IMG/VR virus record: IMGVR_UViG_3300023174_005338
Coordinates: 186,001-250,000 of that record
Direction: 5' to 3' (one strand)
Length of the DNA: 64,000 nucleotides
The position numbers and the translations under genes were made by a program. This document shows, piece by piece, positions 4,180 through 52,629 of this stretch (its first letter is position 1; every line of letters begins with the position of its first letter). The notes beneath the pieces are model-generated. The model made no database searches. It was not told the origin of the DNA and worked only from the letters and a program-made list of their open reading frames with translations.

Positions 4180-4935
4180 ATGAAACAACTTGCAAATCAA
4201 ATCGCAGAATGGATCAAGAACTATGCCAACAATGCTGGCATCCAGTCATTGGTGGTGGGTATATCGGGCGGAATTGACAGTGCTGTGGTCAGCGCACTGT
4301 GCGCCCGAACAGGGTTGAACACCGTGGCAGTGACCATGCCCATACGCCAACGTCCGGATCTACACGATCTCAGCATGCGCCAAGGTGCCTGGTTGGCACA
4401 ACACTTTGACAATGTACGGCATGAAATCATTGATTTGACTTCGACCTTTGATGAGTTTGAACAGCGTCTTGCCTCCTATGCTAATTTGTTGGGCATGGCC
4501 AACAGTCGCAGTCGACTGCGCATGGTTACCTTGTATCAAATTGCCCAAAGTGTTAATGGCATTGTAGTGGGCACAGGCAACAAGGTAGAAGACTTTGGTG
4601 TGGGATTTTATACTAAGTACGGCGACGGTGGCGTGGATATCAGTCCCATTGGTGACCTGCTCAAAACCGAAGTTTGGGATTTGGGCCGTGAGTTAGGTAT
4701 CCTGCAAGACATCATTGATGCGGCGCCCACAGATGGACTGTGGGATGATGGACGCACTGATCAAGATCAATTGGGTGGACTGACCTATGCTGAACTTGAG
4801 CTGGCCATGGCCCAAGACGAAGGTAGTAAACTGGTCAAAAATGGGCTGGAACTAGAACGCTTGCAAAAGTATCAAGCCTTGCGTGCTCGTAGCCTACACA
4901 AAATGCAACCTATTCCGGTGTTCAAAAAATCTTAG
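4180..4935 (+). CDS. nadE: NH3-dependent NAD+ synthetase
   Basis: PP-loop SGGIDS, NSRSRLRM, GTGNKVE, YTKYGDG, DISPIGDL, APTDGLW; no glutaminase domain. Confidence 0.92.
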   Translation: MKQLANQIAEWIKNYANNAGIQSLVVGISGGIDSAVVSALCARTGLNTVAVTMPIRQRPDLHDLSMRQGAWLAQHFDNVRHEIIDLTSTFDEFEQRLASYANLLGMANSRSRLRMVTLYQIAQSVNGIVVGTGNKVEDFGVGFYTKYGDGGVDISPIGDLLKTEVWDLGRELGILQDIIDAAPTDGLWDDGRTDQDQLGGLTYAELELAMAQDEGSKLVKNGLELERLQKYQALRARSLHKMQPIPVFKKS

Positions 4936-4985
4936 TCTGTGCTGATTCTCCAGATAAATTAGTGACATACTGATCAAAGGAAACC

Positions 4986-6224
4986 ATGGCAAAAATTGGA
5001 TTTGTAGGAATTGGAAAATTAGGGTTGGACTGTGCAGAAGTCTTTGCAGAAAAACACGAAGTACGCGGTTACGACATTCACCCACGCACCAGCGATAGTG
5101 TAAAAGTATGCGGCATTGAAGAATTAGTCAAAGAAAGTGAGTGGATTTTTATTGCTGTGCCTACTCCGCATGCTGAAGGCTACGATGGCAGTGTTCCAAG
5201 CAGTCACATGACTCCCCGAGACTTTGGTCACGATGCTGTTATTGATGCCATTAATAAAGTCAATCAATTTGCTACTACATCTAAAAAAGTCGTGTTGATT
5301 AGTACAGTATTGCCGGGAACGACTCGCAACAAGTTTGTTCCTTTGTTGGATTCCAAACACGAGTTTGTTTACAATCCTTATTTGATCGCCATGGGTTCGG
5401 TCAAGTGGGACATGGTCAATCCAGAAATGATCATGCTGGGCACTGAAGATGGTAACCTAACCGGCGTTGCCAGTGAACTTCACGACCTGTATGAAACCAT
5501 CATGCAGAACAATCCACGCTACGAAGTTGGCACCTGGGACGAGTGTGAAGCCATAAAGATTTTTTACAACACATTTATCAGTGCCAAAGTTGGCCTGGTC
5601 AATATGATCCAGGACTTTGCTATGAAGATTGGCAATATCAATGTGGATGTTGTGACCAATGCCCTGGCTCGCAGCACCATGCGTATCATGGGTCCTAAAT
5701 ACATGACAGCAGGCATGGGCGATGCAGGTGCTTGCCATCCCAGAGACAACATTGCTCTGCGTTGGTTAGCAACGGAATACAACATTGGCTATGACCTGTT
5801 TGACACAGTGATGCATGCTCGTGAAATCCAAGCACGAAATTTGGCCTTGTTCTTGGTCGAGCAGGCCGAGAAACACAACTTGCCTATTGTGATCCACGGC
5901 AAGGCCTACAAGCCTGACGTTGAATATTGTATCGGTAGCTATAGCACATTAGTTGGATTTTATGTAGCCGAAGCCGGTCATCGTTGTTATTATGTGGATC
6001 CCTTGGCCGATGACACAACCGATGTGGTCAATGATTTTGATCAGCCAGCAGTGTTTCTATGGGCACACAATCGCAAGATCACGTATGAATACACCGGTAA
6101 CACACCTGACACGCAACCGTACTGCAAAATTGAATCCGGCAGTGTTATAGTTGATCCGTGGCGTAAATTACCTGTTGACATGCCGGACATAACTGTGGTG
6201 CACTACGGCAATACTAGATTCTAA
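4986..6224 (+). CDS. UDP-glucose/GDP-mannose dehydrogenase family protein
   Basis: GIGKLG, AVPTP, STVLPGT, KIFYNTFIS, catalytic GGxC-like DAGACHPRD, GKAYKP. Confidence 0.88.
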   Translation: MAKIGFVGIGKLGLDCAEVFAEKHEVRGYDIHPRTSDSVKVCGIEELVKESEWIFIAVPTPHAEGYDGSVPSSHMTPRDFGHDAVIDAINKVNQFATTSKKVVLISTVLPGTTRNKFVPLLDSKHEFVYNPYLIAMGSVKWDMVNPEMIMLGTEDGNLTGVASELHDLYETIMQNNPRYEVGTWDECEAIKIFYNTFISAKVGLVNMIQDFAMKIGNINVDVVTNALARSTMRIMGPKYMTAGMGDAGACHPRDNIALRWLATEYNIGYDLFDTVMHAREIQARNLALFLVEQAEKHNLPIVIHGKAYKPDVEYCIGSYSTLVGFYVAEAGHRCYYVDPLADDTTDVVNDFDQPAVFLWAHNRKITYEYTGNTPDTQPYCKIESGSVIVDPWRKLPVDMPDITVVHYGNTRF

Positions 6225-15332: not shown

Positions 15333-16340
15333 TCAGCGACCGCCGCAACTGTTCACACATCCATATAATCGACCTTCGGCTATGCTATTTTTTGCCCAGG
15401 TCGCCTCTACACTGTTAAACCAAGCAACACAATGTTCAAGATCGTATTCTAATGCATTATTTTCCTTGATCAAGGGCAACAACTGTTGGTTACCTGGATG
15501 TGTCATTTGTCCTGGATAGAATCCCAAAAAGCAACAAGGATAAACTGACCCGTCGGCAGCTATGTATATTTCTTTCAAACGCTTGTGGTGACAAGTCAGT
15601 TGTAAAGGCATGGTATCTTTGTCAGATTTAATTGTGCGGGGATCAAACCACGTGATATGACTCTCCAGGAGATCTTTGACCGGTGGCGGATTTTGCCGCT
15701 CATGATCAGTGTAAGGTTGTCCTAACCAATGACTGAATTCTCCGGTGCGAGCGTACACTGGTCCACGATTGCGTCCTTCATCAATGTTTTCAAATCCAGC
15801 GAATCCCAAGTCCAGAGACAATTTCTTACAGGCCGCTTCCTGATGGCGATTGTGATCAAATGGAATAAATCTCCAGACAGCGTGGCCACCGGCTGCAATA
15901 AAAGCCTGAGCATTTGCAATCACAGTGTGCCAATTGGTGTCTTGTCTGTACACATCGTGCGTGTCAGCCAGACCGTCCAGGGCAAATCCAATCCGCACAC
16001 CAGGCCTGGCCAAGGAAGCCCACCATTCTGGAGTGCGCATGCTGCCGTTGGAGTTGATATACACCGGCACACCCTGATCGCAGAGATAGTGTACAATTTC
16101 ATGAGCATCATGTGCCAGACCAAAATCTCCCAAATTACCATTGAAGCTGATACCTCTACTGAGTTGTTGTAAAAAATCTGGTTTCAATATGTGCTTGATG
16201 TTGTCCAAGGTCAACTCGGTCACAGGATACCCACCATTGTAATCGTATCCGCGATAGTTTCTCATGCACATGGGGCAACGAGCATTACAACGGGTGGTCA
16301 ATTCTATTTGAATCTGACAAATGTCAGCGAGTTCGAGCAT
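15333..16340 (-). CDS. Radical SAM protein with C-terminal SPASM/twitch-like domain
   Basis: CNARCPMC; C-terminal C...[13 protein letters not shown]...CVNSC; start MLELAD at 16340 lies 5 nt after a TATAAATA (16353-16346). Confidence 0.85.
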
Positions 16341-16363
16341 AGAGATATTTATAAAATGGGTGG

Positions 16364-16392
16364 TTGACAAGGTATAAATACCTGTTTATAAT
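16364..16392 (+). promoter_or_regulatory. sigma70-type promoter with embedded TATAAATA, driving the putative attenuator leader
   Basis: TTGACA-17 nt-TATAAT; TATAAATA at 16373-16380. Confidence 0.8.
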
Positions 16393-20186: not shown

Positions 20187-21329
20187 ATGTTCACGCTAGA
20201 TCACTGTGATTTAACACCGGACAAATTTGGATATTATTTGGTTGGCAACGCAAAGACCTATAGTAAACTAGAAGCGTTGGAAATACAAAAAGTAACCGGC
20301 GACTTTCCCCAGTGGAATTTCAACAATGAAATTTATCAAATCCAGGACTGGACACAAGAGCCCAGCACCACGCTTTGGGAACTTTACAAACAACGTGCAG
20401 TGCAAATAAGAAATTCATATGACTATGTGGTTTTATTTTACAGCGGGGGCAGTGACAGCCAAAACATGCTCAGCGCCTGGATGGCCAGTGGTTTAAAAAT
20501 TGATGAAATTGCCACTCAATGGAATGTTGCTGGAACTGGAAGCAGATCAACTTTTTGGAATGGAGAAGTAGATCGAGTGGCTTTGCCCTGGATCCAACAA
20601 TTAAAAAATCAAGGCTTGGAATTTAATTTTCGCTTGCTGGATATTAGTGCAGATACTCAAAATGTCATTGAGTTTCATGCACATGATTATGCCTATCATG
20701 CCAATACCGCTCTAAGTCCCAACAACTACGCCAAAAACATGTGGCGACATCAGATTACCGAATACAGACAAATCATAGAGTCTGGAAAAAAACTGTGTTT
20801 TGTATGGGGCAGTGAAAAACCGTTTTTGCTTTGGGATGGTCGACACTACTGTGTGTTCCAAGACATCATTGACAATTGTGTGAATCCCTACACTCAGCGT
20901 CAATATCACCAAGGCTGGTACGATGAACTGTTTTATTGGGCTCCTGAACTGCCACAAATTGTGATAAAACAAGTTCATGTATTAAAAAATTTTTGCCAGA
21001 CTAACTTGGATCCTGCAAACTTTCAGGACACGTTTACAAGACATGGATATAATCCACACATTAAAAAATGGCTACGAGAAGATGTTGTTAAAACTCTACT
21101 GTATCCTTACTGGGATACTTCGACTTATGTGGATGGCAAACCTCCCTCGATGGTGTTAAGTTGGAGAGACAATTGGTTGTTTGTCAGCACACAGGGACAG
21201 CAATATCGTGACTATTTACAAAGTCTTAAACAACAATTAGATTTGACCTGGTTGAATGATGTTGATCACATCAGCAAAGGTTTAAAAAATTGTATCTCAC
21301 CCCATTACTATTTAGAGGAAAAAAAATGA
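20187..21329 (+). CDS. PP-loop (adenine nucleotide alpha-hydrolase-like) protein of unknown function
   Basis: VVLFYSGGSDS; paralogue at 24928-26232. Confidence 0.6.
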   Translation: MFTLDHCDLTPDKFGYYLVGNAKTYSKLEALEIQKVTGDFPQWNFNNEIYQIQDWTQEPSTTLWELYKQRAVQIRNSYDYVVLFYSGGSDSQNMLSAWMASGLKIDEIATQWNVAGTGSRSTFWNGEVDRVALPWIQQLKNQGLEFNFRLLDISADTQNVIEFHAHDYAYHANTALSPNNYAKNMWRHQITEYRQIIESGKKLCFVWGSEKPFLLWDGRHYCVFQDIIDNCVNPYTQRQYHQGWYDELFYWAPELPQIVIKQVHVLKNFCQTNLDPANFQDTFTRHGYNPHIKKWLREDVVKTLLYPYWDTSTYVDGKPPSMVLSWRDNWLFVSTQGQQYRDYLQSLKQQLDLTWLNDVDHISKGLKNCISPHYYLEEKK

Positions 21330-22264
21330 ATATACTACGCGGTTTAATTTTATCATTGATCTTGTTTGCCACCGGTGTGCATGCAGATAAAAAGAATATC
21401 ACAGTGACTCTGCCATTTCCAGCCGGCGGCGCCACAGATCGAGTTTGGCGAGTATTGGATTCCAAGCTCACTGAGCAATTGCAAAGTCACGGTATCAAGC
21501 TACAGACAGAATACAGGGTCGGAGCCGGGGGCGGCATAGCCGGCACACATGTGGCCACTGCACCGGTTGGTGAAACACGTTTGCTGTTCACAAGTGCTAG
21601 TCTAATGATAGCACCCAGCTCAAATGACAATATAAATTATCGACCCAACGATTTTACAATGTTGGGATATTTTGGAAGTTTGCCAATGATGGTAGTAGTT
21701 CCAGCTGCTGGGCCAAAAAACATCAAGGAATTACAACAACTGTGTCGGACTAGGCCTATAATGTATGGGTCAGCTGGTGTTGGATCAACTGTGCATTTGG
21801 TTTCAGAAGAATTTTTAAAGTCTATCAACTGTTCTGCCACCCATGTGCCTTATAAAGGTGCCCCTGCAGCCATGCCTGATCTTGTGTCAGCACGCCTGGA
21901 TTTTGTAGTTGACTGGATTTCCAGCCCGACCATGAGCTTGGTCGAACAGAATCGACTCAATGTTGTTTTGATATTAGGACAAAACAGACTTAAACAATTT
22001 CCTCAGGTGCCAACTGCTGGGCAGGCAGGTTTAAAATTAGAGGCTCTAAATAATTGGCAGGTATTTGTAGCAAACAGCACAGCTGATACCAAGGAAATTG
22101 AAATCATACGTCGAGCCGTGCAACGAGTCATGCGCGATCCAGACAATCTAAAACTATTTACAGATCTAGGACTGGAAGGTGCAGGTAATACAGTTGATGA
22201 AAATTTTTTGTTTGACAACTATCAATATTATCAAAAAATCATTAAAAAATACAACTTAAAGTAA
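21326..22264 (+). CDS. Tripartite tricarboxylate transporter substrate-binding protein (Bug/TctC)
   Basis: Signal peptide, FPAGGATD, GAGGGIA, YGSAGVGSTVHL, HVPYKG. Confidence 0.88.
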   Translation: MNILRGLILSLILFATGVHADKKNITVTLPFPAGGATDRVWRVLDSKLTEQLQSHGIKLQTEYRVGAGGGIAGTHVATAPVGETRLLFTSASLMIAPSSNDNINYRPNDFTMLGYFGSLPMMVVVPAAGPKNIKELQQLCRTRPIMYGSAGVGSTVHLVSEEFLKSINCSATHVPYKGAPAAMPDLVSARLDFVVDWISSPTMSLVEQNRLNVVLILGQNRLKQFPQVPTAGQAGLKLEALNNWQVFVANSTADTKEIEIIRRAVQRVMRDPDNLKLFTDLGLEGAGNTVDENFLFDNYQYYQKIIKKYNLK

Positions 22265-22300
22265 TCGAATACTTGGTATGCAACTTGTTTTGTTTATGTC

Positions 22301-22384
22301 GCAATCATTGTCAATGATTGCACTAATCAACGCATTTGATTAGATTGGTATAAATACTTGATAAAATTGCTGACTTTCGTCAGC
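22301..22384. promoter_or_regulatory. Dyad repeats and late-type promoter upstream of dctP
   Basis: GCAATCATTG-T-CAATGATTGC; CTAATCAA-N5-TTGATTAG; TATAAATA 22349-22356; GCTGAC-TTTC-GTCAGC. Confidence 0.5.
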
Positions 22385-22418
22385 CGATGACACGTTCATA
22401 CAAATCAAGGAGATAAAA

Positions 22419-23366
22419 ATGACCGATAAACTTAAACTTCGTTGGGTTTTAGCACACGTACCTTACGATCTATTCCTGCGCAGTGCAGCAGCCTTTGCTA
22501 AAAAAGCTCACGAAATCAGTAATGGTCAAATTGAAATTGAGATCATGGGTCTTGAACAATACGAACAACGATACAACAACAATCAACCCGTCAACAAATA
22601 TGAAGTGTTGAATCTGGTTGATCAGGGTGTTATTGAAATGAGTCAGATGTACAATGCACAACTGGGTGCGATCAATCATGATCTACGTGCTTTGGACATG
22701 CCTTATCTGTTTGAAAATCACGAACATGCACGCCGTGTGCTTGACGGAGATATCGGACTCGACATGCTACAAGGTCTTTCCAAAAACAGCAACGTTAGAG
22801 GATTGGCATTTACATATTCAGGTGGATTCCGCATGATGGTGGCCAATGAGCCCTTGGAATCAGTGAATGACATTTCTGGACAACGAGTTCGCGTGGGACT
22901 CACACCAGTGGCTTCTGACACTTTCCGTTTGCTGGGTGCAGATCCAGTGGCCATGGGTGTGCATGCTGTAGCTGATGCCTTGAGAGACAATCAAGTGGAT
23001 ATTGGTGAAAATACCTGGGCTAGATTTTTCCGATCTGGTGTGTCGCACTATGCCACCCACGTGGCCAACACACGTCACAGCCTGTTCCTGACTGCAATTA
23101 TAATTAACAAAAACGTCTGGAATGGATTCACTGCCGAAACACAGGCCATGCTACAAGCAGCAGCATTACAAGCAGCCGAAGAAGAGCGCCAAGAAAGTTT
23201 AGCAGACAATGACGCAGTCATGGCCAAATGCCAAGAAGTCGGCATCAAGGTCTGGGACTGGAGTGATGAGCAATGTGCAGAAATGAAAGCAATCACAGCA
23301 CCTGTGTATGAAAAATACAAGGATCAGTTTTCAACCAACCTTATTGACAAAATCAAACAGTCATAA
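22419..23366 (+). CDS. dctP: TRAP transporter substrate-binding protein DctP-like
   Basis: LDMPYLF, GGFRMM, GQRVRV, LGADPVAM, VDIGEN, HSLF; no obvious signal peptide. Confidence 0.85.
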   Translation: MTDKLKLRWVLAHVPYDLFLRSAAAFAKKAHEISNGQIEIEIMGLEQYEQRYNNNQPVNKYEVLNLVDQGVIEMSQMYNAQLGAINHDLRALDMPYLFENHEHARRVLDGDIGLDMLQGLSKNSNVRGLAFTYSGGFRMMVANEPLESVNDISGQRVRVGLTPVASDTFRLLGADPVAMGVHAVADALRDNQVDIGENTWARFFRSGVSHYATHVANTRHSLFLTAIIINKNVWNGFTAETQAMLQAAALQAAEEERQESLADNDAVMAKCQEVGIKVWDWSDEQCAEMKAITAPVYEKYKDQFSTNLIDKIKQS

Positions 23367-23370
23367 CACA

Positions 23371-23391
23371 CTCGAGCGCAATGCGCTCGAG
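23371..23391. terminator. Hairpin between convergent genes
   Basis: CTCGAGCGCA-A-TGCGCTCGAG; no clear U tract. Confidence 0.45.
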
Positions 23392-23392
23392 A

Positions 23393-23965
23393 TCAAAAAA
23401 GGTTTTTGATCTTATCTGGAAGTTGTACAAAACTGATCTGTAGATTGATTCTTGGACTGACAAGATTTTCGGTGCTGTGCAACACCTGCCCGTTCAACAG
23501 ATACCAGGTATTTGCCGGAACTCGGATCGAATCTATCAAAGTTAGATCCGAGTATCGACCTCGGGCCAGTCCATCCTCTCTCACAACAGGGTGATTTTTT
23601 TCCTGCCAAAAACAAACTTCTGCATCTGGGCCCCCGTTGGTGATAGGAAATATCAACACATAATTCCTAACCTTGTCGGTATGTGCACCGGTGCTGGAAA
23701 TATCAGGAGCACCATCGCAGTACATGACAGTTGTGAATAACATGTCATTGCATATGTGTTGGCGCATCCAGGATTCACAGTCACGGGGTGGCACACGACA
23801 CATGTTGCGTCGGGCTGGTCCGTTGCATCCACGCCAGTCTTCCAAAATTCTTATTCCTGTGTATCCCATGTTGTGTTCTTGTGGAATGTTGCTTGTATCG
23901 ATTTGATCCAACAAGGTTTTTGGAGGTACAGGAAGACCAGGTAAAAGTTTGTAATTCCATGTCAT
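23393..23965 (-). CDS. Putative 2OG-Fe(II)/cupin-fold oxygenase
   Basis: AHTD (HxD) and distal VLHS followed by RINLQISF. Confidence 0.5.
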   Translation of the reverse strand: MTWNYKLLPGLPVPPKTLLDQIDTSNIPQEHNMGYTGIRILEDWRGCNGPARRNMCRVPPRDCESWMRQHICNDMLFTTVMYCDGAPDISSTGAHTDKVRNYVLIFPITNGGPDAEVCFWQEKNHPVVREDGLARGRYSDLTLIDSIRVPANTWYLLNGQVLHSTENLVSPRINLQISFVQLPDKIKNLF

Positions 23966-24023
23966 GCAATTACTTATGGCGGGTCACCGGTCACTAAATA
24001 TCACACATTTTACAAAATCTTTG

Positions 24024-24920
24024 ATGTCTTTTTTCAAATCCACTTATCCCATCATGTGCGCTGTAATGAACGGTGCAAGTGATATATCACTGGCCAAAGC
24101 AGTTGCACGGGCTGGAGCCACTCCCAGTTTGATGTTGTGGATACGTGATGCTCATGGTAACAAAAACTACCAATTGCTAGACCGAACCCTGGATGAATTT
24201 AAGACAGCCACCGGACACTGTGACTTGGTACTGGGTTTAATTTTTGATGATTTGTTAGATTACAACATGGTCAAATTGGTCAATGATTATCAAGTGGGGT
24301 ATGTGGAATTTTTGTCAGACCTGGTGGCACCAGAAGAGATCATGAAAGATCCCAAGGCTACCATACTGATGAAAAAAGCAAAAAAAACAACCAAAATACT
24401 GTGCAGAGTGTCGGATCACAATCAAATGTGCTGGTTTGCCGATGCATATTGTGCCAAAGGTTCAGATGGGGCAGGGTTTGGCGGCAAACTCACAGTTGAA
24501 CAGATGTTTGTCAAACAAAAAAATTTTACTCCAGACATACCTGTAATTCCATATGGTGGTATAGGTCTGGCAGAACACGTCAAACATTACACTGACCTAG
24601 GCGCACCAGGCGTGGCTGTTGGTACCTTGTTGGCGGCCAGTCAAGAAAGTTGTGTGAGTGCCCAAATCAAAGAGGCCATGATCAAAGCCACCAGTGAAGA
24701 TCTCTATAGATTCCCTGACACCGGACAACGAGCTCTGATTCTGGGCTCTTTGTCTGAAATCAACAAGGACACTCGACACTGGAACAAATTAGACAGCCTA
24801 AAAGCTGGCATCCACGGTGATGGAACCCAAGGCTTGATTTATGCTGGTCAAAGCATTGACTATGTTACAAAAATACGTACCGTGGAAGATATAGTTAAAG
24901 ATTTAGCGAAACTTGTATAA
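24024..24920 (+). CDS. Nitronate monooxygenase/FabK-family FMN oxidoreductase
   Basis: YPIMCAVMNG, KGSDGAGFGG, IPYGGIG, GVAVGTLLAASQES, YAGQS. Confidence 0.8.
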   Translation: MSFFKSTYPIMCAVMNGASDISLAKAVARAGATPSLMLWIRDAHGNKNYQLLDRTLDEFKTATGHCDLVLGLIFDDLLDYNMVKLVNDYQVGYVEFLSDLVAPEEIMKDPKATILMKKAKKTTKILCRVSDHNQMCWFADAYCAKGSDGAGFGGKLTVEQMFVKQKNFTPDIPVIPYGGIGLAEHVKHYTDLGAPGVAVGTLLAASQESCVSAQIKEAMIKATSEDLYRFPDTGQRALILGSLSEINKDTRHWNKLDSLKAGIHGDGTQGLIYAGQSIDYVTKIRTVEDIVKDLAKLV

Positions 24921-24927
24921 AACCAAG

Positions 24928-26232
24928 TCAACAAGACCAATGGTCGGTGGCAATCAAATCACTGGCACTGAATATTTTTCCGTTTATTGTGGTAATTTTG
25001 CTGGGTGGCATGGTCTGACCATGTAATTTTCCTACAGTGTACATCGGAGATTGATATCTAAGATATTGCCCAATGTCTCCATTACGGGCCTTGACAAAAA
25101 ACTTGGGATTTATCAGGGCCTGATGTGCATTTATGGCATGTTGCCAAGGCTTCAAATATTCCTGTGCATGTGGGTCAGAATGAAACCAATGGAACCATTC
25201 GGGACTATGGTGTGTGTTGGTTTGTTTATGAACCTGGAATGTTTTATGATCGTAACTGGGATACAACACAGCTTTTTTCAAGCGACGGGTTGTTTCGGAA
25301 CTTTCTTTTCTGATTTGGTTGACAGTATTTTTATGTGTCTCCCAACAGGCAAATGCTTTTCTGAAATGTGGATATTGATTGAGAAACAACAACAATGCCT
25401 GGGCTTGTTCACGAACTATCTCTGGCATGTCCGGAGTCCAATAAAAAAATTCTATGTTACGAGCCCATCCATCTGGCATGACATCACTTTTGCTGCCAGC
25501 ATTGGCGGCCATGTCATCAAAATACACACACAGCCAATCGTCGATGATTTTTACAAAAGGAGTATCAACTGCCAAAATTCCAGCCACACTGCCGTGTTGA
25601 TCTGTGCGTTGCCTTAACACTTGATCTAGAGCACGCCAACGTTGAATTACACTGTAGCTGTGTTTTTCTGCAATGAGTATGGTATCGTCGTGGCATTCGT
25701 TTTCTTCCAACTCAGACAAAACGTCACAGATAGTGACCTTGACTCTTGGATAGTTTTGTTGCAACCAGCGTAGCTTGGGCTCAATGGCAAAATCCCATTC
25801 ACTGGACATGTTTTGTGGCCGGGTGTCTTTGCTGGGATTATAACGACCTTTGAGACGACTGTGAGGCCATAGAATCACCACTTCATCCAGATGTATATTG
25901 TTCAATAAAAAGCTGTGCAGTACGGTCGTGCTGTCGCCGCCGCCGGACCAGGCCAGACAAAGCCATTTGTATTTTTGCCGCAGTTGCCAGGCGCGGTCTC
26001 GATAAAGATCATTCAGAGTCCGACCATTGGTCTGCATCCAATTGATTTTGTCATAGGTTGATCTGTTGAAATTCCAACTGATGTCCTGGCCGGTTCTGGT
26101 GGCTTCTTGCATGGCATACACTTTATGATTGAACGCTCGTTGGCCCACTTGGTAGTATCCATTCTTGGCAAAAAAAGATAAGCTAGCTGCGGTATCTGCC
26201 ACCACTGGCAAAGAAAATGATTCAGTCATACT
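24928..26232 (-). CDS. PP-loop protein of unknown function, paralogue of 20187-21329
   Basis: LCLAWSGGGDS; shared GYYxVG, WNFN and EFFYWxP blocks. Confidence 0.6.
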   Translation of the reverse strand, partial: SMTESFSLPVVADTAASLSFFAKNGYYQVGQRAFNHKVYAMQEATRTGQDISWNFNRSTYDKINWMQTNGRTLNDLYRDRAWQLRQKYKWLCLAWSGGGDSTTVLHSFLLNNIHLDEVVILWPHSRLKGRYNPSKDTRPQNMSSEWDFAIEPKLRWLQQNYPRVKVTICDVLSELEENECHDDTILIAEKHSYSVIQRWRALDQVLRQRTDQHGSVAGILAVDTPFVKIIDDWLCVYFDDMAANAGSKSDVMPDGWARNIEFFYWTPDMPEIVREQAQALLLFLNQYPHFRKAFACWETHKNTVNQIRKESSETTRRLKKAVLYPSYDHKTFQVHKQTNTHHSPEWFHWFHSDPHAQEYLKPWQHAINAHQALINPKFFVKARNGDIGQYLRYQSPMYTVGKLHGQTMPPSKITTINGKIFSASDLIATDHWSC

Positions 26233-26319
26233 GCATTTATTTACAGGCATCTGCATTTGTCTAAAAATAAACAGTGGTCATGACTCAAACTAAATATAGG
26301 TCTATCAGTTGGAAATCAT

Positions 26320-27210
26320 ATGAACATTATACGTGCAATATTGACAACTTTCCTTTGTTGGACTACTGTGGCCACGGCACAACCCAAATTAGAAATAGTT
26401 GTGCCTAATCCTCCTGGAGGAACCACGGATCAAGTGGCACGGCACATACAGTCTATTTTGTCTAGTCACACTGACAGATCTGTCATAGTTGTCAATAAAC
26501 CCGGTGCTTTTGGTAAAATAGCCATGGACTATGTGACCAGCAACTCGACCAAAAAAGACATGATACTGATAATCAGCACAGGAACTTTTGTACAGTCTGT
26601 GATAGACAGTAACAATGACTTGAAGAATTTTTATGTGGTAGCTCCTGTGATGACAACTCAAAGTGTGTTGGTGACTACCACAACATCTAATATCCGCAAC
26701 TGGAAAGAATTCTTGGCGCGAGCACGCAATGAACCTCTCAGTTGTGGTGTCAGCAACGGTGCTTCTAATCTGGCCGCTCAATACCTAATAAAAAAATTAA
26801 ACTTGCCCAATGTAGAAATTATTCCATTCAGTGGCAGCACAGGGGTCAATACATCTTTGCTTGGTAACCATATACAATGCGCCTTTGATACTTTGACTAC
26901 CCTGCAACCGCTGATTCAAGATGGAAAACTCTCCATATTGGCCACCATGGCCAACAAACCTCCCAAGCAATATCCCAATTTGCTATCAATCGAACAGAAT
27001 GTCCCTGGGTTTGATTTCCAAAACTGGTACGCCGTGGCTGTACATGATAAATCGTCAACAGAATTCATGAACTGGTATAGATTGGTCATGCCACAACTGC
27101 TCCAAGGAATTTCTAGTTTTGATGGAGTTTATGCAACACGCCCTCGGGCAGATTGGATCTCTGATCAAACTCAATTTGTTAACACCATGCTACAATACAA
27201 CAAAAAATAG
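26320..27210 (+). CDS. Bug/TctC substrate-binding protein
   Basis: Signal peptide, PNPPGGTTD, NKPGAFG, IPFSG, FQNWYAV. Confidence 0.82.
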   Translation: MNIIRAILTTFLCWTTVATAQPKLEIVVPNPPGGTTDQVARHIQSILSSHTDRSVIVVNKPGAFGKIAMDYVTSNSTKKDMILIISTGTFVQSVIDSNNDLKNFYVVAPVMTTQSVLVTTTTSNIRNWKEFLARARNEPLSCGVSNGASNLAAQYLIKKLNLPNVEIIPFSGSTGVNTSLLGNHIQCAFDTLTTLQPLIQDGKLSILATMANKPPKQYPNLLSIEQNVPGFDFQNWYAVAVHDKSSTEFMNWYRLVMPQLLQGISSFDGVYATRPRADWISDQTQFVNTMLQYNKK

Positions 27211-41882: not shown

Positions 41883-42415
41883 AAATAAAAATAACTGCTG
41901 AGTCTGTAGGCGTCTGCTGGCACAGGATTAAACATACCATGCCATTGTAAGGGCTGGCTACCGTCAGGATCAAGATGATTCAACATGATGTAGCCTGAAT
42001 TGGGCACACTGTCAAATTGATGTTTCAAACTATTTGTGTTTTTAAAATGATAAAACCCAGTTCCGTACTGGTCACTGGGCATTATCCAATATAGTTGCAT
42101 GGCATTAGGTAAATGCCCGTCGGTGTGCATGCTACAAGTAAATCCAGGTTCGTCCAACCACCAGTGCCCGTGGCAGGATTGAAATTCAGTGCCCAGGCTC
42201 TGATTGATTGTTGGCAAACACTTTTCTATGTATCGATTGACTTGTCTGACTCGTGAGTCATCATTTGTAATTTTTCTACGGGGCCAATTTTCTTGAAGAT
42301 TTTCTTTTTGCCAAGGCAGTTCAGTCCATTGTATTACTAAAATTTCATTCAATTGCTCTTGGGGCAACAGATCACTCACATGCCATAAACGATGATCAAT
42401 TTGTTCAATCATCAA
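41873..42415 (-). CDS. Putative 2OG-Fe(II) oxygenase-like protein
   Basis: MHTD (HxD), distal WHG, RLSSY. Confidence 0.5.
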   Translation of the reverse strand: MMIEQIDHRLWHVSDLLPQEQLNEILVIQWTELPWQKENLQENWPRRKITNDDSRVRQVNRYIEKCLPTINQSLGTEFQSCHGHWWLDEPGFTCSMHTDGHLPNAMQLYWIMPSDQYGTGFYHFKNTNSLKHQFDSVPNSGYIMLNHLDPDGSQPLQWHGMFNPVPADAYRLSSYFYFYK

Positions 42416-43878
42416 CTGAAAACCTTAACTCCATACTTTTGTTCAAATCTATCAGCGTCAGCACGATCGTTGATCATAGGCTCGCCTCTAATGTTGAGAC
42501 TGGTATTCAGCAACATGGGACATCCAGTGGCTTCATACCAGGCCTCTAAGAGCGATCTAATGCCTGAGCCGTCAGACGCAACAGTCTGTACTCGGCTAGT
42601 GTTATCCACATGACAGATAGCAGGGTATAGGTCAGGACGGCGGCAATTTGCGACTGACTGCATATAAGGACTGCTATGCCAACCGCGGGGCATATGAAAA
42701 AGTTCATGCACATGCTCTGCCAGGACAACCGGCGCAAACGGTCTAAACTTTTGCCTACGTTTGATCTCATTGACTTGATCCTTTATATCTGATCCTCGGG
42801 GATCGGCGAGGAGACTTCGATTTCCAAGGGCTCGGGGTCCAAATTCTGCTCGACCACTAGCGACACCGACGATTCTATCACTTTGTAAATGATCAACGAG
42901 GGCATCAACAGGATACGTTCCTGAGATTGCATGGCCAAGGAACGCATTCCGCCAGTGGAGGCGTCTTCCATGGGCCAGTGCGGCAGCACCAAGGCTGTTG
43001 CCAGCATCGCCAGGACAAGGCATGATCCAAATGTTTTCAAAATATTCACCGAGTTTTCTATTAGCAAGACAGTTCAAAGCCACGCCGCCCTGATAGACTA
43101 GATTAGAACTCCAGCCAAATTCTTGGGCACGACGCATAACACTATATATCAATTCTTCTGTTAAAACCTGGGCACTTGCGGCAATATCTTCGTTGGATGC
43201 AGACCGCAACCAGTCAGGCTCAATGCCTATGTGTAGATTGTCTTCCAGCAAGGCCCGGCATTCTTCAACGTAACATGGCTGTCCGTAGGCACTCATGCCC
43301 ATGGTGATGTATTCTTCATCTAGGGGGTGTAGGCCAATGCGCTGAGTAATCGCACTATAAAACAGCCCGATGCTCCTGGGATAAGTTTGGCTCCAAAGTT
43401 TCTTATAACATGCTCGATTTGTTGCGTTATATTCTGCTCCCCATATCGAGATGGTATCAAACTCGCCTATGGCATCTACGATCACACAAGTGGCACGATC
43501 GTAGGGGCTGGTTTGAAAACCTGCAGCCGCATGGCACAGGTGATGACTGTAAGTTTTTATCTGTCCGGGCGGATGTTGCAACCATGAGCCCAATTGATTC
43601 TTTAATATCTGCTTGACAGTCACATTGGACCAATCTATACCTTGTCCTGACACAAAATTACGTGCTTGTTTTAACCAAGGACGTTCATAATATGCAATGG
43701 TGTCTATGTCGTATTCACAGAATTCTGTCAATAATTCTGGACAAAGATTGGCATCGTTTTTCTTTTTTGAATATCGTTCGCTGTGACCGGCAAATACAAT
43801 TTCACCGTCGCTGCGTATGAGCGTGGCAGCTGCGTCATGAAATCCAGCACTGAGTCCCAGTGTGTACTGATGCTTCAT
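42412..43878 (-). CDS. Carbamoyltransferase (CmcH/NodU/TobZ family)
   Basis: GFHDAAA, HHLCHA, GGVALN, GPRALGNRSLLADPR, RPFAP, LNTSLN. Confidence 0.93.
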   Translation of the reverse strand: MKHQYTLGLSAGFHDAAATLIRSDGEIVFAGHSERYSKKKNDANLCPELLTEFCEYDIDTIAYYERPWLKQARNFVSGQGIDWSNVTVKQILKNQLGSWLQHPPGQIKTYSHHLCHAAAGFQTSPYDRATCVIVDAIGEFDTISIWGAEYNATNRACYKKLWSQTYPRSIGLFYSAITQRIGLHPLDEEYITMGMSAYGQPCYVEECRALLEDNLHIGIEPDWLRSASNEDIAASAQVLTEELIYSVMRRAQEFGWSSNLVYQGGVALNCLANRKLGEYFENIWIMPCPGDAGNSLGAAALAHGRRLHWRNAFLGHAISGTYPVDALVDHLQSDRIVGVASGRAEFGPRALGNRSLLADPRGSDIKDQVNEIKRRQKFRPFAPVVLAEHVHELFHMPRGWHSSPYMQSVANCRRPDLYPAICHVDNTSRVQTVASDGSGIRSLLEAWYEATGCPMLLNTSLNIRGEPMINDRADADRFEQKYGVKVFS

Positions 43879-50182: not shown

Positions 50183-51230
50183 TGATATATTGGGCAAACT
50201 GTTGTGGGAACTCTTTACGAACTTGCAGACGAAGTTCTGCCAAGCGTTGTTGATTGTATTTACATTTATCTTCTGCAGCCGTTATAAAACTTGATAAATC
50301 TTGCCGGCAAAGATCGTTGACCACGGTCACTATGCGGGCCAGGCGTTCTTGATTGTTGTCAATTTGATCAAATGATTCATCTATCACGTGACCAAAGGTT
50401 TGAAATCCTAACTTGTGTATATCACGATAGTAGCCTCGGTTGGCTACGGCTATCCACGGGTGTCCAATTGCTACTGGCTTCCATATCTTTTCTGTTCTAA
50501 AACTGTACGGATAATCAAATACAGTCTCAGTTACTAGGCTAAAGTAAGTGTCGAGATATGGCCTAGGATTAAGATATATTTCGCCCCAATCGTTGTTGAA
50601 CAATGCCGGTTTGGCATATCCTGACATAGACATGGTAGTATTTTGTTTGTAAAAATCAAATTCATAACAAGCGGGTAAAAGTTTGATATCACCTGCTGCC
50701 GAGTCCAAGTTGGTCCACAGAGCTTGATCCAACACGTTGGCCAGATTGTCTAACAACTGTCGACGATGACGCCGTCCACGACCATTCAGACACAAAAACT
50801 TGTAAGGTCGCGAATCTGACCATTGATCCTTGTACTGCTGTATGGCCAAGTAGTTCTCACTGTAGTCAAGAATCTTGGGCATGAAGTTTTCGTAGTAAAG
50901 ATAAGGTATATCCGATTGCATGTGCCCACCCGAGATGATCAAGATACGACCTTGCTGGACCAGTTCTTGTATGCCCAGGCCTTGTATTTGCCGGAGCATG
51001 GTGTCGCTGCCTTCGGCTGGATTGCCCAGTATGGGTAGTATGGTGCCTTGAGTGGCTAGGTCACGTATGCGATCAATGTTGGCGTTGAACTGTTGACGAC
51101 TGATAAGATAGATTGCTCCGGGTATCACCTTGTGCGTGGCAAAGTCATAGAAAGATTCATCTTGCCAGGCTCTGGTGAACTCCTTGACTTCACAACATTG
51201 ATCAACAACCAGCTTACGATTGCCGAGCAT
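50163..51230 (-). CDS. Hypothetical protein, GT-B/fucosyltransferase-like C-terminus
   Basis: ETVFD...RTEKIWKPV...GFQTF...DESFD; start uncertain (51230 or 51257). Confidence 0.55.
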   Translation of the reverse strand: MLGNRKLVVDQCCEVKEFTRAWQDESFYDFATHKVIPGAIYLISRQQFNANIDRIRDLATQGTILPILGNPAEGSDTMLRQIQGLGIQELVQQGRILIISGGHMQSDIPYLYYENFMPKILDYSENYLAIQQYKDQWSDSRPYKFLCLNGRGRRHRRQLLDNLANVLDQALWTNLDSAAGDIKLLPACYEFDFYKQNTTMSMSGYAKPALFNNDWGEIYLNPRPYLDTYFSLVTETVFDYPYSFRTEKIWKPVAIGHPWIAVANRGYYRDIHKLGFQTFGHVIDESFDQIDNNQERLARIVTVVNDLCRQDLSSFITAAEDKCKYNQQRLAELRLQVRKEFPQQFAQYINERSGV

Positions 51231-52629
51231 GGTACTCACATTCCGCCCACCAGGCACTCATTTCAGGAAACACAGTCAAAAAATCAGTACCGTGCCTGCG
51301 ATCTGCTTCGTTAAAAAAGCGATAAAAGTCTGCTTTGTTTTGTTTTATATATGTGGGATCCAGTTGTTGGCCATCACGCATCCAGGCTATGTCACGATCT
51401 AGCCTAGCTATCTCATAATCTTTGAATCCTTGGAATCTGGTGGCTTCAGTTTCTGTTTGTCGTATCATCCAGGCCCAAAGATATTCTAACTGTTCTGCAT
51501 ACGACTCGGGCAAGATTTGCAGGCTCTGCCAGGCGGGTTGGCGCAACACCGGAGTATCAAACCATACTCGTTGATAAGTCTTGCTGTAAATTTTACGCAG
51601 ACCCAGTATGCCTGCAAACAAATTTGGAAGTCCAGTAACACTTAGATTGTTCATGGTCACGATAAATGTCACACTGTTACGACCAGGAATCTCAGTAAGG
51701 AACTGATTTACTCTGTCCCACAATAAATCAAAGTTCAGGCCGTGTCTGATGTATTCGGCCTGTGAACCAAAACTGTCAAGACTGACATACTGCATGAAGT
51801 GTTCAATCCGTTCGCCCTCACACAATTGTTTGACATAGCCTAGATACTTCTGCCAAGATTTTTCATCCACGCTGAAGTTTGATGTCACGTTCAAGTGTAA
51901 ATCTGGTTTGGGATTGTCCAACACATAGTCAAACACTCGATAGGTATTTCGATCTAGTAAAGGTTCACCACCGGTCATACGGAAGTGTTCCAGTTCTGGA
52001 TATAAGGTAGGCCACCACGCCCAAAACGCATCCACATAAGGGTTTTGTTCTCTTACTGGTATAGGACGATTACGCCCAACAAAGTGGCTAGGATCATTGT
52101 GGACAGTTGAAGTAGGATATCCACCATGGGTGTTAACTTCCTGCTGCCAGGTGCTCGAAAACTGCGGACTGCAATAGCTACAAGCAAGATTACAAGCATG
52201 ATTAAAATTGACTTCGACATAACTAGGGACAACATCTTCATCTCCGATTGAATTTACTACAACATCAAAGTCCTTGGCAGCCCAGGGCTCACCACTACGG
52301 TAGTGTCTATCTGATAATTTGTTGTTATCTTCCATTGCCCAACAATAGCCGCACTCGCTAGAGCGTTCTTGCCGTAACATTATCTTACGCTGTTCTTTTT
52401 TGTGCGGAGTATTATGTAACGCACTAGGATTGTCTGCTAATAGCTCTGCAGGAATAGGGTGCAGTGGAGGATGATAACAACTGTTGTTAAGCCCTGTGGG
52501 CAAGTGTAGGCTAACCTGTTTCCATTTGGCCAAGCAGAGTGCGGGGCCAAGATTCGCCTTCATGAACTCTGCATCGCCTAGGAATTTTGATTTAAAGTCG
52601 GTTACAACTTCATCGCCTTTGTTTTGCAA
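51214..52629 (-). CDS. Radical SAM protein (CxAKW/HPP subfamily)
   Basis: CLAKW...SCYHPP...CGYC; CNLACSYC; TGGEP; TSNF; TTG start. Confidence 0.88.
   Translation of the reverse strand: MQNKGDEVVTDFKSKFLGDAEFMKANLGPALCLAKWKQVSLHLPTGLNNSCYHPPLHPIPAELLADNPSALHNTPHKKEQRKIMLRQERSSECGYCWAMEDNNKLSDRHYRSGEPWAAKDFDVVVNSIGDEDVVPSYVEVNFNHACNLACSYCSPQFSSTWQQEVNTHGGYPTSTVHNDPSHFVGRNRPIPVREQNPYVDAFWAWWPTLYPELEHFRMTGGEPLLDRNTYRVFDYVLDNPKPDLHLNVTSNFSVDEKSWQKYLGYVKQLCEGERIEHFMQYVSLDSFGSQAEYIRHGLNFDLLWDRVNQFLTEIPGRNSVTFIVTMNNLSVTGLPNLFAGILGLRKIYSKTYQRVWFDTPVLRQPAWQSLQILPESYAEQLEYLWAWMIRQTETEATRFQGFKDYEIARLDRDIAWMRDGQQLDPTYIKQNKADFYRFFNEADRRHGTDFLTVFPEMSAWWAECEYHARQS

Follow-up and report, generated by a model that had tools for sequence, protein, structure and literature searches.

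Why does a virus carry two divergent copies of an uncharacterised PP-loop protein, each directly beside the gene for a substrate-binding protein of the Bug/TctC type? The question is raised by positions 20,187-27,210 of a stretch of 64,000 nucleotides (the window), which corresponds to bases 186,001-250,000 of a 337,119-bp IMG/VR virus record (IMGVR_UViG_3300023174_005338; G+C ~45%) that has direct terminal repeats and is rated complete. Here, the PP-loop proteins PP-A and PP-B are paired with the binding proteins TctC1 and TctC2, respectively (Table 1). The explanation that we propose, and to which we give about even credence, is a joint one. Exported phage TctC and DctP proteins would capture organic acids for the tripartite tricarboxylate transporters (TTT) and the tripartite ATP-independent periplasmic (TRAP) transporters of the host, the cytoplasmic PP proteins would adenylate the carboxyl group and pass it to ammonia or an amine, and an NMO-like flavoenzyme together with a protein resembling 2-oxoglutarate (2OG) oxygenases, both encoded between the two pairs, would add redox steps.

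PP-A and PP-B had been described in an initial annotation, made from the letters alone, as paralogues with an SGGxDS loop that share GYYxVG, WNFN and ExFYWxP blocks. The open reading frames (ORFs) and the common blocks are indeed as described, and a BLASTP alignment with 26% identity over 323 columns and an E-value of 1e-22 identifies the two as real paralogues. The loop reads FYSGGSDSQ in PP-A, with SGGSDS at residues 86-91, and AWSGGGDST (SGGGDS) in PP-B. S86, G87, G88 and D90 are invariant in the family alignment, as are K27, W43, N46, D106/E107, E127, R187, D226, E247, K318 and S325, and SGGxD[ST] is intact in 123 of the 125 full-length members that were collected. In the two members lacking the canonical motif (sampled loci L049:7977-9125 and L056:7977-9125), the PP gene immediately follows a TctC gene; these members may represent an inactive or altered paralogue.

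The description of the PP-loop proteins as apparently uncharacterised was borne out, as neither has a match in Pfam (E<=0.01), NCBIfam or PHROG, and a profile search of PDB sequences with the family returned chance matches only. With a hidden Markov model (HMM) of the family, PP-A and PP-B are the sole members in the 337-kb genome. Outside it, the family is large: 420 relatives, none of them named and all from metagenomes, came out of a word-based search, the longest of their contigs measuring 328 kb, and an exhaustive search by profile yielded no fewer than 1,744 clusters at 50% identity (E<=1e-3), 745 of them with E<=1e-30. Among predicted viral models and those of the ESM Atlas, every structural neighbour is an uncharacterised Caudovirales protein. 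A pattern scan of 185,579 prokaryote species genomes (one per species), whose short peptide patterns make it insensitive to distant relatives, gave three weak matches, all in freshwater metagenome-assembled genomes (MAGs). The match that was examined, on contig JBBARV010000010.1 (labelled Candidatus Nanopelagicales), lies on a phage contig mis-binned into an actinobacterial MAG, as genes for virion structural proteins, an Rz-like spanin and an endolysin accompany a TctC-PP pair there; the presence of a spanin speaks for a Gram-negative host. In the searches made here, the PP family was found in phage contexts only and not in Burkholderiales. The initial annotation had proposed that conservation of the neighbourhood be examined both in phages and in Burkholderiales; adjacency to TctC is conserved in many phage contigs.

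For the fold of these proteins, an AlphaFold (AF2) model of PP-A, built from a 27-sequence alignment, reached a predicted local distance difference test (pLDDT) score of 89.8 and a predicted template modelling (pTM) score of 0.90. In a VIA structural search, the best matches of this model were human asparagine synthetase (9b6c, Z 11.5 over 292 residues) and the E. coli enzyme (1ct9, Z 11.4 over 288), followed by beta-lactam synthetase (1jgt, Z 10.2), the hydroxyamidotransferase TsnB9 (8.6) and carbapenam synthetase (8.3). Z values of 7.7 or less were obtained for NadE, ATP sulfurylase, TilS, NcsA, GMP synthetase, LarE, QueC and PAPS reductase (NadE 7.7, TilS 6.5-6.9, QueC 6.0, APS/PAPS reductase 5.0-6.4), and more than 30 PP-loop enzymes matched the model with Z 5-11.5. 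Foldseek gave probabilities of 0.97-1.0 to carbapenam synthetase, TrmU, LarE and NadE. Whether the proteins might lack a PP-loop fold, a possibility that would have spoken against the initial annotation, was thus addressed in three ways, and the AF2 model, Foldseek and VIA all give a PP-loop fold. By motif and by the Rossmann-like alpha/beta fold of the model, PP-A and PP-B are assigned to the PP-loop superfamily. Moreover, as the structural search ranks asparagine and beta-lactam synthetases above the other PP-loop classes, the architecture is predicted to be that of the AsnB-class synthetase domain. AsnB was among the candidates first put forward for comparison and was the best by structure, although no profile matched it; QueC, NadE, TilS/TtcA and PAPS reductase were neither a profile match nor the best structural match.

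The likeness to the synthetase domain of AsnB, and to beta-lactam synthetase, carbapenam synthetase and TsnB9, extends over 273-292 residues (Z 8.3-11.5): SGGxDS lies in the turn between the first strand and helix of a Rossmann-like domain, and a helical C-terminal part follows. By analogy, the chemistry to be expected of the PP proteins is that of this class, namely adenylation of a carboxylate and then attack by a nitrogen nucleophile. We nonetheless do not call the PP proteins asparagine synthetases, since the tests of AsnB membership that are based on sequence failed. The Asn_synthase profile (PF00733) matches neither PP-A nor PP-B, and in the genome it finds two other ORFs only. PP-A has neither an N-terminal nucleophile (Ntn) glutaminase domain nor a Cys at position 2, as it begins with MFTLDH and has only ~60 residues ahead of the PP-loop domain. 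These strongly conserved and family-specific residues, which carry GYYxVG and WNFN, stand where AsnB has its Cys glutaminase domain, and the restriction of the family to phage contexts is a further difference. The model is therefore best described as that of a putative new phage family that would work like an AsnB-class adenylating enzyme. A third and shorter PP-loop protein of the same genome (312 aa, SGGIDS, genome 177,138-178,076) reaches the Pfam Asn_synthase cut-off (28 bits) and probably belongs to the viral PP-loop clusters of 285-317 aa that are the nearest named Atlas neighbours of PP-A.

Each PP gene directly adjoins a TctC gene, one pair being stop/start-coupled and the other divergent, just as had been noticed at first. 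TctC1 probably starts with the ATG at 21326, which overlaps the stop codon of PP-A (TGA, 21327-21329) as ATGA and has GAGGA 7 nt upstream, an arrangement from which translational coupling of TctC1 to PP-A is predicted. TctC2 and PP-B diverge from a 63-bp gap. Both binding proteins are well above the Pfam TctC gathering cut-off of 27 bits (114.2 bits for TctC1 and 59.8 for TctC2), are 21% identical to each other, and align along their length with the solved Bug proteins BugE, Bug27, BugD, AdpC and the terephthalate-binding protein. Among PDB sequences, TctC1 matches BugE best (2dvz, 4.4e-28), followed by Bug27 and the terephthalate-binding protein, which score nearly as well, and the best match of TctC2 is AdpC (5oei, 2.8e-17), with Bug27 at 3e-17. 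The two phage proteins resemble BugD, BugE, Bug27, AdpC and TphC in their full-length Pfam TctC match, their signal peptide and their N-terminal P-x-x-GG-x-x-D motif.

Where they differ from the Bug proteins of TTT systems is in being encoded without TctA. In the complete 337-kb genome no TctA (PF01970) was found, TctB not having been searched for separately, and no DctM was found in it either. The phage binding proteins would hence have to use the membrane subunits of the host, which implies a Gram-negative host that has TTT and TRAP systems. All of the phage TctC homologues collected possess an N-terminal hydrophobic signal sequence and the PP proteins possess none, according to a heuristic call rather than a dedicated predictor. 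The partners of each pair are accordingly placed in different compartments by prediction, with TctC exported and PP in the cytoplasm. Expansion of the Bug family is typical of Burkholderiales, and one of the weak PP-family matches in the scan of species genomes lies on a contig binned as Polynucleobacter; a host of the Burkholderiales type should be considered a lead and not a finding.

To what extent the pairing recurs in other phages was assessed in 80 IMG/VR loci obtained with the family alignment, 15 obtained with PP-B, seven contigs of closer PP-A relatives and three loci from genome collections. ORFs were called, PP and TctC were labelled by HMM, and 87 loci were left after dereplication. 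PP and TctC are both present in 29 of these and are immediate neighbours in 23 of the 29, when 5.9 would be expected from shuffled gene order (p<5e-5). The pairing thus exceeds chance. In the closer relatives of PP-A (58-67% identity), TctC lies directly downstream in all that were sampled, and NMO comes next in two. In the set led by PP-B, 9 of 15 loci have TctC next to PP; the two genes are convergent or share a strand, with TctC then on either side of PP, whereas the pair of the window itself is divergent. A FastTree phylogeny with 100 members of the family requires at least 14 changes in the state of adjacency to TctC, as compared with 24 on average and never fewer than 19 when the labels were shuffled, so that adjacency appears to be partly inherited, yet gained or lost many times.

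Pairs persist down to identities of ~46% for PP and ~31% for TctC, and the pairwise identities of PP and of the neighbouring TctC correlate (Pearson 0.78, Mantel p 2e-4); it should be noted that the loci are phylogenetically related, and that this p-value and that of the permutation therefore overstate independence. The initial annotation had spoken of a duplicated module. Two pairs are present, as it had said, but that they arose by duplication of the pair as a unit is only suggested, by this correlated divergence. Two or three PP paralogues often stand in tandem in the sampled loci, which argues for several substrates. A phage family of 185 aa (no Pfam or NCBIfam match; invariant W, C, YAQN, GDY and WYCSG) recurs just upstream of PP in TctC-bearing loci, for example at L080:7423-7980 and L073:2204-2716 and in five others.

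TctC genes are found beside adenylating enzymes elsewhere in the same genome as well. The genome encodes five TctC, exactly two PP, two AMP-binding (ANL) and two NMO proteins. Both PP genes and both ANL genes adjoin a TctC gene, four of the five TctC genes thus being beside an adenylating enzyme, and the NMO genes adjoin PP-B in one case and an ANL gene in the other. In the first of the two ANL modules (Table 1), the genes for TctC and for the AndAc-like Rieske alpha subunit (NCBIfam 358 bits, which is below the equivalog cut-off) overlap by 4 bp, and the whole looks like a phage set for the uptake and dioxygenation of an aromatic acid. Among several hundred genes, it is very unlikely that all four adenylating enzymes would adjoin TctC by chance. 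The enzymes beside these four TctC genes, all of them known or predicted to adenylate carboxylates, have two unrelated folds, and by this analogy the PP enzymes would fill the role that acyl-adenylate-forming ligases have in the other pairs. A binding protein combined with a carboxylate-activating enzyme would then be a recurring design, which the ANL-TctC pairs fit.

Taken as a mechanism, these data would be read as follows. TctC1, TctC2 and DctP would be exported to the periplasm of a Gram-negative host, where they would bind a carboxylate and hand it over to the TTT or TRAP membrane subunits of the host. In the cytoplasm, PP-A and PP-B would use ATP to adenylate the carboxyl group of the imported compound, yielding acyl-AMP and pyrophosphate, and ammonia or an amine would resolve the acyl-AMP to an amide, by which the acid would be trapped or converted. 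The NMO-like flavoenzyme and the probable 2OG oxygenase may then act on this compound, or on a related one, in additional redox reactions. With such an arrangement, phages would come equipped for both the capture and the chemical activation of an organic acid. The module for capture and activation of a small acid that the initial annotation had proposed gains from the PP-loop fold, from the TctC adjacency conserved in many phage contigs and from the ANL-TctC parallel. It is qualified in that the setting is a freshwater jumbo phage, in that the binding proteins are orphans and would depend on the host for membrane subunits, and in that we infer, rather than observe, that the substrate of each PP enzyme is the ligand of the neighbouring binding protein.

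Two known systems are similar to the proposed one. In bacterial catabolic loci, a Bug or TRAP binding protein is paired with an acyl-CoA synthetase or a ring-hydroxylating oxygenase, as in the terephthalate tph cluster. The likeness is that the gene of the binding protein lies beside that of the enzyme which first acts on the imported acid, and the phage also has, as such loci do, modules that combine TctC with ANL and Rieske alpha/beta or with ANL and NMO. The difference is that, in the pairs studied here, a phage-only PP-loop protein takes the place of the ANL ligase as activating enzyme and that the whole module is viral. The second system is PstS of cyanophages, an auxiliary periplasmic binding protein encoded by the phage. 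In both cases the phage-encoded protein is presumed to feed a transporter of the host during infection, but the transporters in our case would be of the TTT and TRAP types and not ATP-binding cassette (ABC) systems, the binding proteins are multi-copy, and they are coupled to a dedicated cytoplasmic enzyme.

Several points weigh against this explanation and should be considered. The substrate, the product and the ATP turnover of the PP proteins are predictions from model and analogy, and the use of host TTT subunits by phage TctC is likewise an assumption by analogy. The likeness to the AsnB class is structural only, with identities of 6-9% to AsnB (6-11% when its glutaminase-less relatives are included) and without the PF00733 match. 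In the genome, one of the five TctC genes, the fourth (within a region at about 126,122-130,282 of the genome), has no adenylating neighbour. The relatedness of the loci, with its effect on the p-values, was mentioned above. Most importantly, TctC is found in only 29 of the 87 dereplicated family loci, while about two thirds lack it and have porin or outer membrane protein (OMP), DUF2061 and radical S-adenosylmethionine (SAM) genes beside PP instead, which indicates that the chemistry of the PP family does not depend on TctC.

Among these loci without TctC are those with single-copy PP genes of a type that we call core (loci L008-L043 and similar, e.g., L032:9543-10934, L031:6421-7791 and L038:6794-7234). 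The core proteins are 45-51% identical to PP-A and are found on contigs of T4-like phages that also encode portal, prohead protease, baseplate and gp46/47-like proteins. Their conserved block has the order SAM decarboxylase, redoxin, OMP beta-barrel or alphaproteobacterial-type porin (Porin_2), PP, DUF2061 membrane protein, N-twitch radical SAM protein (NF033640, 294 bits), a gene without a name, and GP88; KpsS-like capsule genes and heptose adenylyltransferase-like genes are found near core PP genes. The OMP or porin upstream of PP can be read as an envelope uptake protein once more, and thus as the same theme, but the context may equally mean that PP has an envelope-related function that is unrelated to TctC ligands.

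The latter reading leads to the rival explanation that survives best, although we consider it rather unlikely: the PP family would act on something other than a TctC ligand, such as an envelope precursor or sugar (in the amidation of a glycan or peptidoglycan building block), a carboxyl group on a protein or a base in a nucleic acid, and TctC would merely be co-located in a co-expressed block for envelope and host interaction. The envelope-related neighbours of the core members, among which TctC is absent, speak for it, as do further structural matches to enzymes acting on sugars, tRNA and proteins (8wex, Z 4.4; TilS, 6.5; Cap9, 6.0). These matches to PP-loop enzymes that modify tRNA, sugars or proteins are, however, much weaker than those to the AsnB class, and the PP proteins have no RNA-binding domain. 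Neither the tight ATGA coupling nor the repeated re-creation of the PP-TctC neighbourhood in varied orientations would be expected from loose co-location, and the ANL-TctC pairs of the same genome point to activation of carboxylates.

According to a second rival, which we regard as distinctly less probable, the adjacency of PP and TctC has no functional meaning and reflects multi-copy, fast-evolving accessory genes that gather in variable islands and are moved jointly, for instance by homing endonucleases. Genes resembling HNH endonucleases do occur in several of the PP loci, the tandem PP arrays and the multiple TctC copies show that both families expand, and related loci are not independent. 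Islands of this kind would nonetheless not account readily for adjacency in 23 of 29 loci when 5.9 is expected within loci, for pairs that persist at the low identities given above and remain as PP-TctC(-NMO) in closer relatives, or for the position of all four adenylating enzymes beside TctC. The least probable rival, a specific version of our own explanation in which the PP proteins are ammonia-dependent synthetases of asparagine or a similar amide and TctC imports aspartate or glutamate in the manner of BugD and BugE, supplying more amide amino acids for virions, draws on asparagine synthetases being the closest solved folds, on BugE (2dvz, reportedly crystallised with glutamate) being the best solved sequence match of TctC1, and on BugD, which TctC also matches, binding aspartate, but it is opposed by the two to three paralogues per phage (25-35% identity), each with a different TctC, which argue for several substrates over one housekeeping reaction, by the lack of any match to PF00733 or to an asparagine synthase NCBIfam, and by the scores of TctC1 against Bug27 and the terephthalate-binding protein and of TctC2 against AdpC.

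Returning to capture and activation by the phage, the PP-loop superfamily, the Bug/TctC binding proteins and the idea of auxiliary uptake genes in phages are already known. As far as we searched, the large and unannotated phage-restricted AsnB-like PP branch is new, and so are its recurrent pairing with orphan TTT binding proteins of phages and the presence of parallel modules of ANL and TctC in this jumbo phage; literature searches found no description of phage TctC or of the phage PP-loop family. A more general proposal, which we offer tentatively and with less confidence than the mechanism itself, is that large freshwater phages carry an undescribed class of auxiliary modules. In these, orphan exported TTT and TRAP binding proteins would re-target host transporters to acids of the phage's choice, and each would be matched to a cytoplasmic adenylating enzyme, one type of which would be a phage-only AsnB-like PP branch that has a substrate range of its own and may form amides by a new chemistry. 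The PP proteins next to porins or OMPs in T4-like phages would be another form of such an entry gate plus activation. If this is true, phages would go beyond boosting host pathways and would supply periplasmic capture and private cytoplasmic activation of particular organic acids, the dissolved carbon and nitrogen compounds that infected freshwater bacteria consume would change, and a very large unannotated family, seen only in uncultured phages, would gain a testable function. The adjacent binding protein could be used to find the substrate of each PP enzyme, so that each pair amounts to an experiment in ligand and enzyme assignment.

Table 1 Features of the paired region and of the two ANL modules. 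Positions refer to the window, except where the genome is named.
Feature	Position	Strand	Evidence and remarks
PP-A (P0001, 380 aa)	20187..21329	+	PP-loop ATP pyrophosphatase of the phage family, predicted AsnB-like synthetase fold; no signal peptide, no glutaminase domain
TctC1, Bug/TTT substrate-binding protein	21326..22264	+	Pfam TctC (PF03401) 1.1e-32; signal peptide MNILRGLILSLILFATGVHA; motif PFPAGGATD
DctP-family TRAP substrate-binding protein	22419..23366	+	Pfam DctP (PF03480) 3.2e-54, 184.6 bits vs cut-off 23.4; NCBIfam TRAP_S1 2.5e-41
GC-rich hairpin, 9-bp stem	23371..23391	.	Convergent gap, DctP to 190-aa ORF; consensus scan
190-aa ORF (P0123), probable 2OG-Fe(II) oxygenase, phage-specific family	23393..23965	-	Conserved residues and Atlas neighbours
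NMO/FabK-superfamily flavin mononucleotide (FMN) TIM-barrel protein	23964..24920	+	Pfam NMO (PF03060) 1.5e-16
PP-B (P0002, 442 aa)	24928..26256	-	Divergent paralogue of PP-A; family HMM 2.8e-101
TctC2, Bug/TTT substrate-binding protein	26320..27210	+	Pfam TctC 3.9e-16; signal peptide MNIIRAILTTFLCWTTVATA; motif PNPPGGTTD
ANL (508 aa) - TctC - AndAc-like Rieske alpha - AndAd-like beta	genome 273,605-277,879		ANL directly upstream of TctC
Second NMO and short ANL (363 aa), divergent from third TctC	genome 158,612-161,606	- (NMO, ANL)	NMO follows ANL; directly before the family B DNA polymerase gene

The genes between the two pairs are those that had first been named there, i.e., dctP, a putative 2OG oxygenase and an NMO/FabK flavoenzyme. 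The DctP gene, which is single-copy in the genome, and the NMO gene are identified by their Pfam matches, the latter with 61.2 bits as compared with a cut-off of 28. The NMO protein also matches FabK in the PDB (2z6i, 3.3e-10), but as a FabK equivalog it was rejected (TIGR03151, 61.9 bits vs a cut-off of 453.1). In the 190-aa ORF, H95, D97, H163, R172 and S178 are invariant in four homologues and follow the spacing of 2OG-Fe(II) oxygenases (HxD...H and a basic residue), and among the named clusters of the Atlas it comes nearest to 2OG-FeII_Oxy_3 (0.90) and Asp_Arg_Hydrox (0.89). No Pfam match was obtained for it, and hhalign against a 2OG-FeII_Oxy_3 cluster found nothing. As the fold prediction failed, the AF2 model (pLDDT 33.6) being unusable, its identity as an oxygenase stays at probable. 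The hairpin in the gap between this ORF and DctP is a possible terminator.

The window belongs to a jumbo phage from freshwater rather than to a Burkholderiales chromosome, as can be seen from the phage-family matches around the pairs (ATPase phrog_1297, phosphoesterase, exonuclease, HNH endonuclease, tail-fibre-like proteins and carbamoyltransferase) and from the presence of the window DNA in lake and other freshwater metagenomes of several studies. Neither tblastn with PP-A, PP-B and one core member nor blastn with the region gave a match in GenBank phage genomes, a collection that may lack the records closest to this genome. In related strains from other lake studies the gene order is kept, and the differences from the window fall mostly on third codon positions (17 of the 20 sites listed for NMO and 14 of 20 for PP-B), which indicates that the genes are under purifying selection. 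Two freshwater metatranscriptome contigs are identical to window positions 22029-22252 (TctC1) and 24172-24525 (NMO). These contigs are a weak hint of expression and do not prove transcription, as carried-over DNA could explain their presence in the RNA library.

Some further genes may be mentioned. Near the fourth TctC gene, weak sulfotransferase-like and GH19-like ORFs are found together with a clear isocitrate lyase (Pfam ICL, 5.7e-106), which is unusual for a phage. At window positions 4180-6224, a canonical NAD+ synthase gene, nadE (NCBIfam nadE 173.6 bits, above the cut-off), precedes a gene that resembles UDP-glucose dehydrogenase (phrog_9148). This nearby NadE and a cytidylyltransferase-like gene that recurs close to PP genes prompted the idea of nicotinamide adenine dinucleotide (NAD) or nicotinate salvage, which found no support, as the recurrent gene resembles RfaE domain II or glycerol-3-phosphate cytidylyltransferase and not nicotinamide mononucleotide (NMN) adenylyltransferase. 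Finally, two radical SAM-like proteins and a Nol-like carbamoyltransferase (phrog_1601, 6.4e-92) are encoded on the minus strand at window positions 15333-16370, 42412-43878 and 51214-52629.

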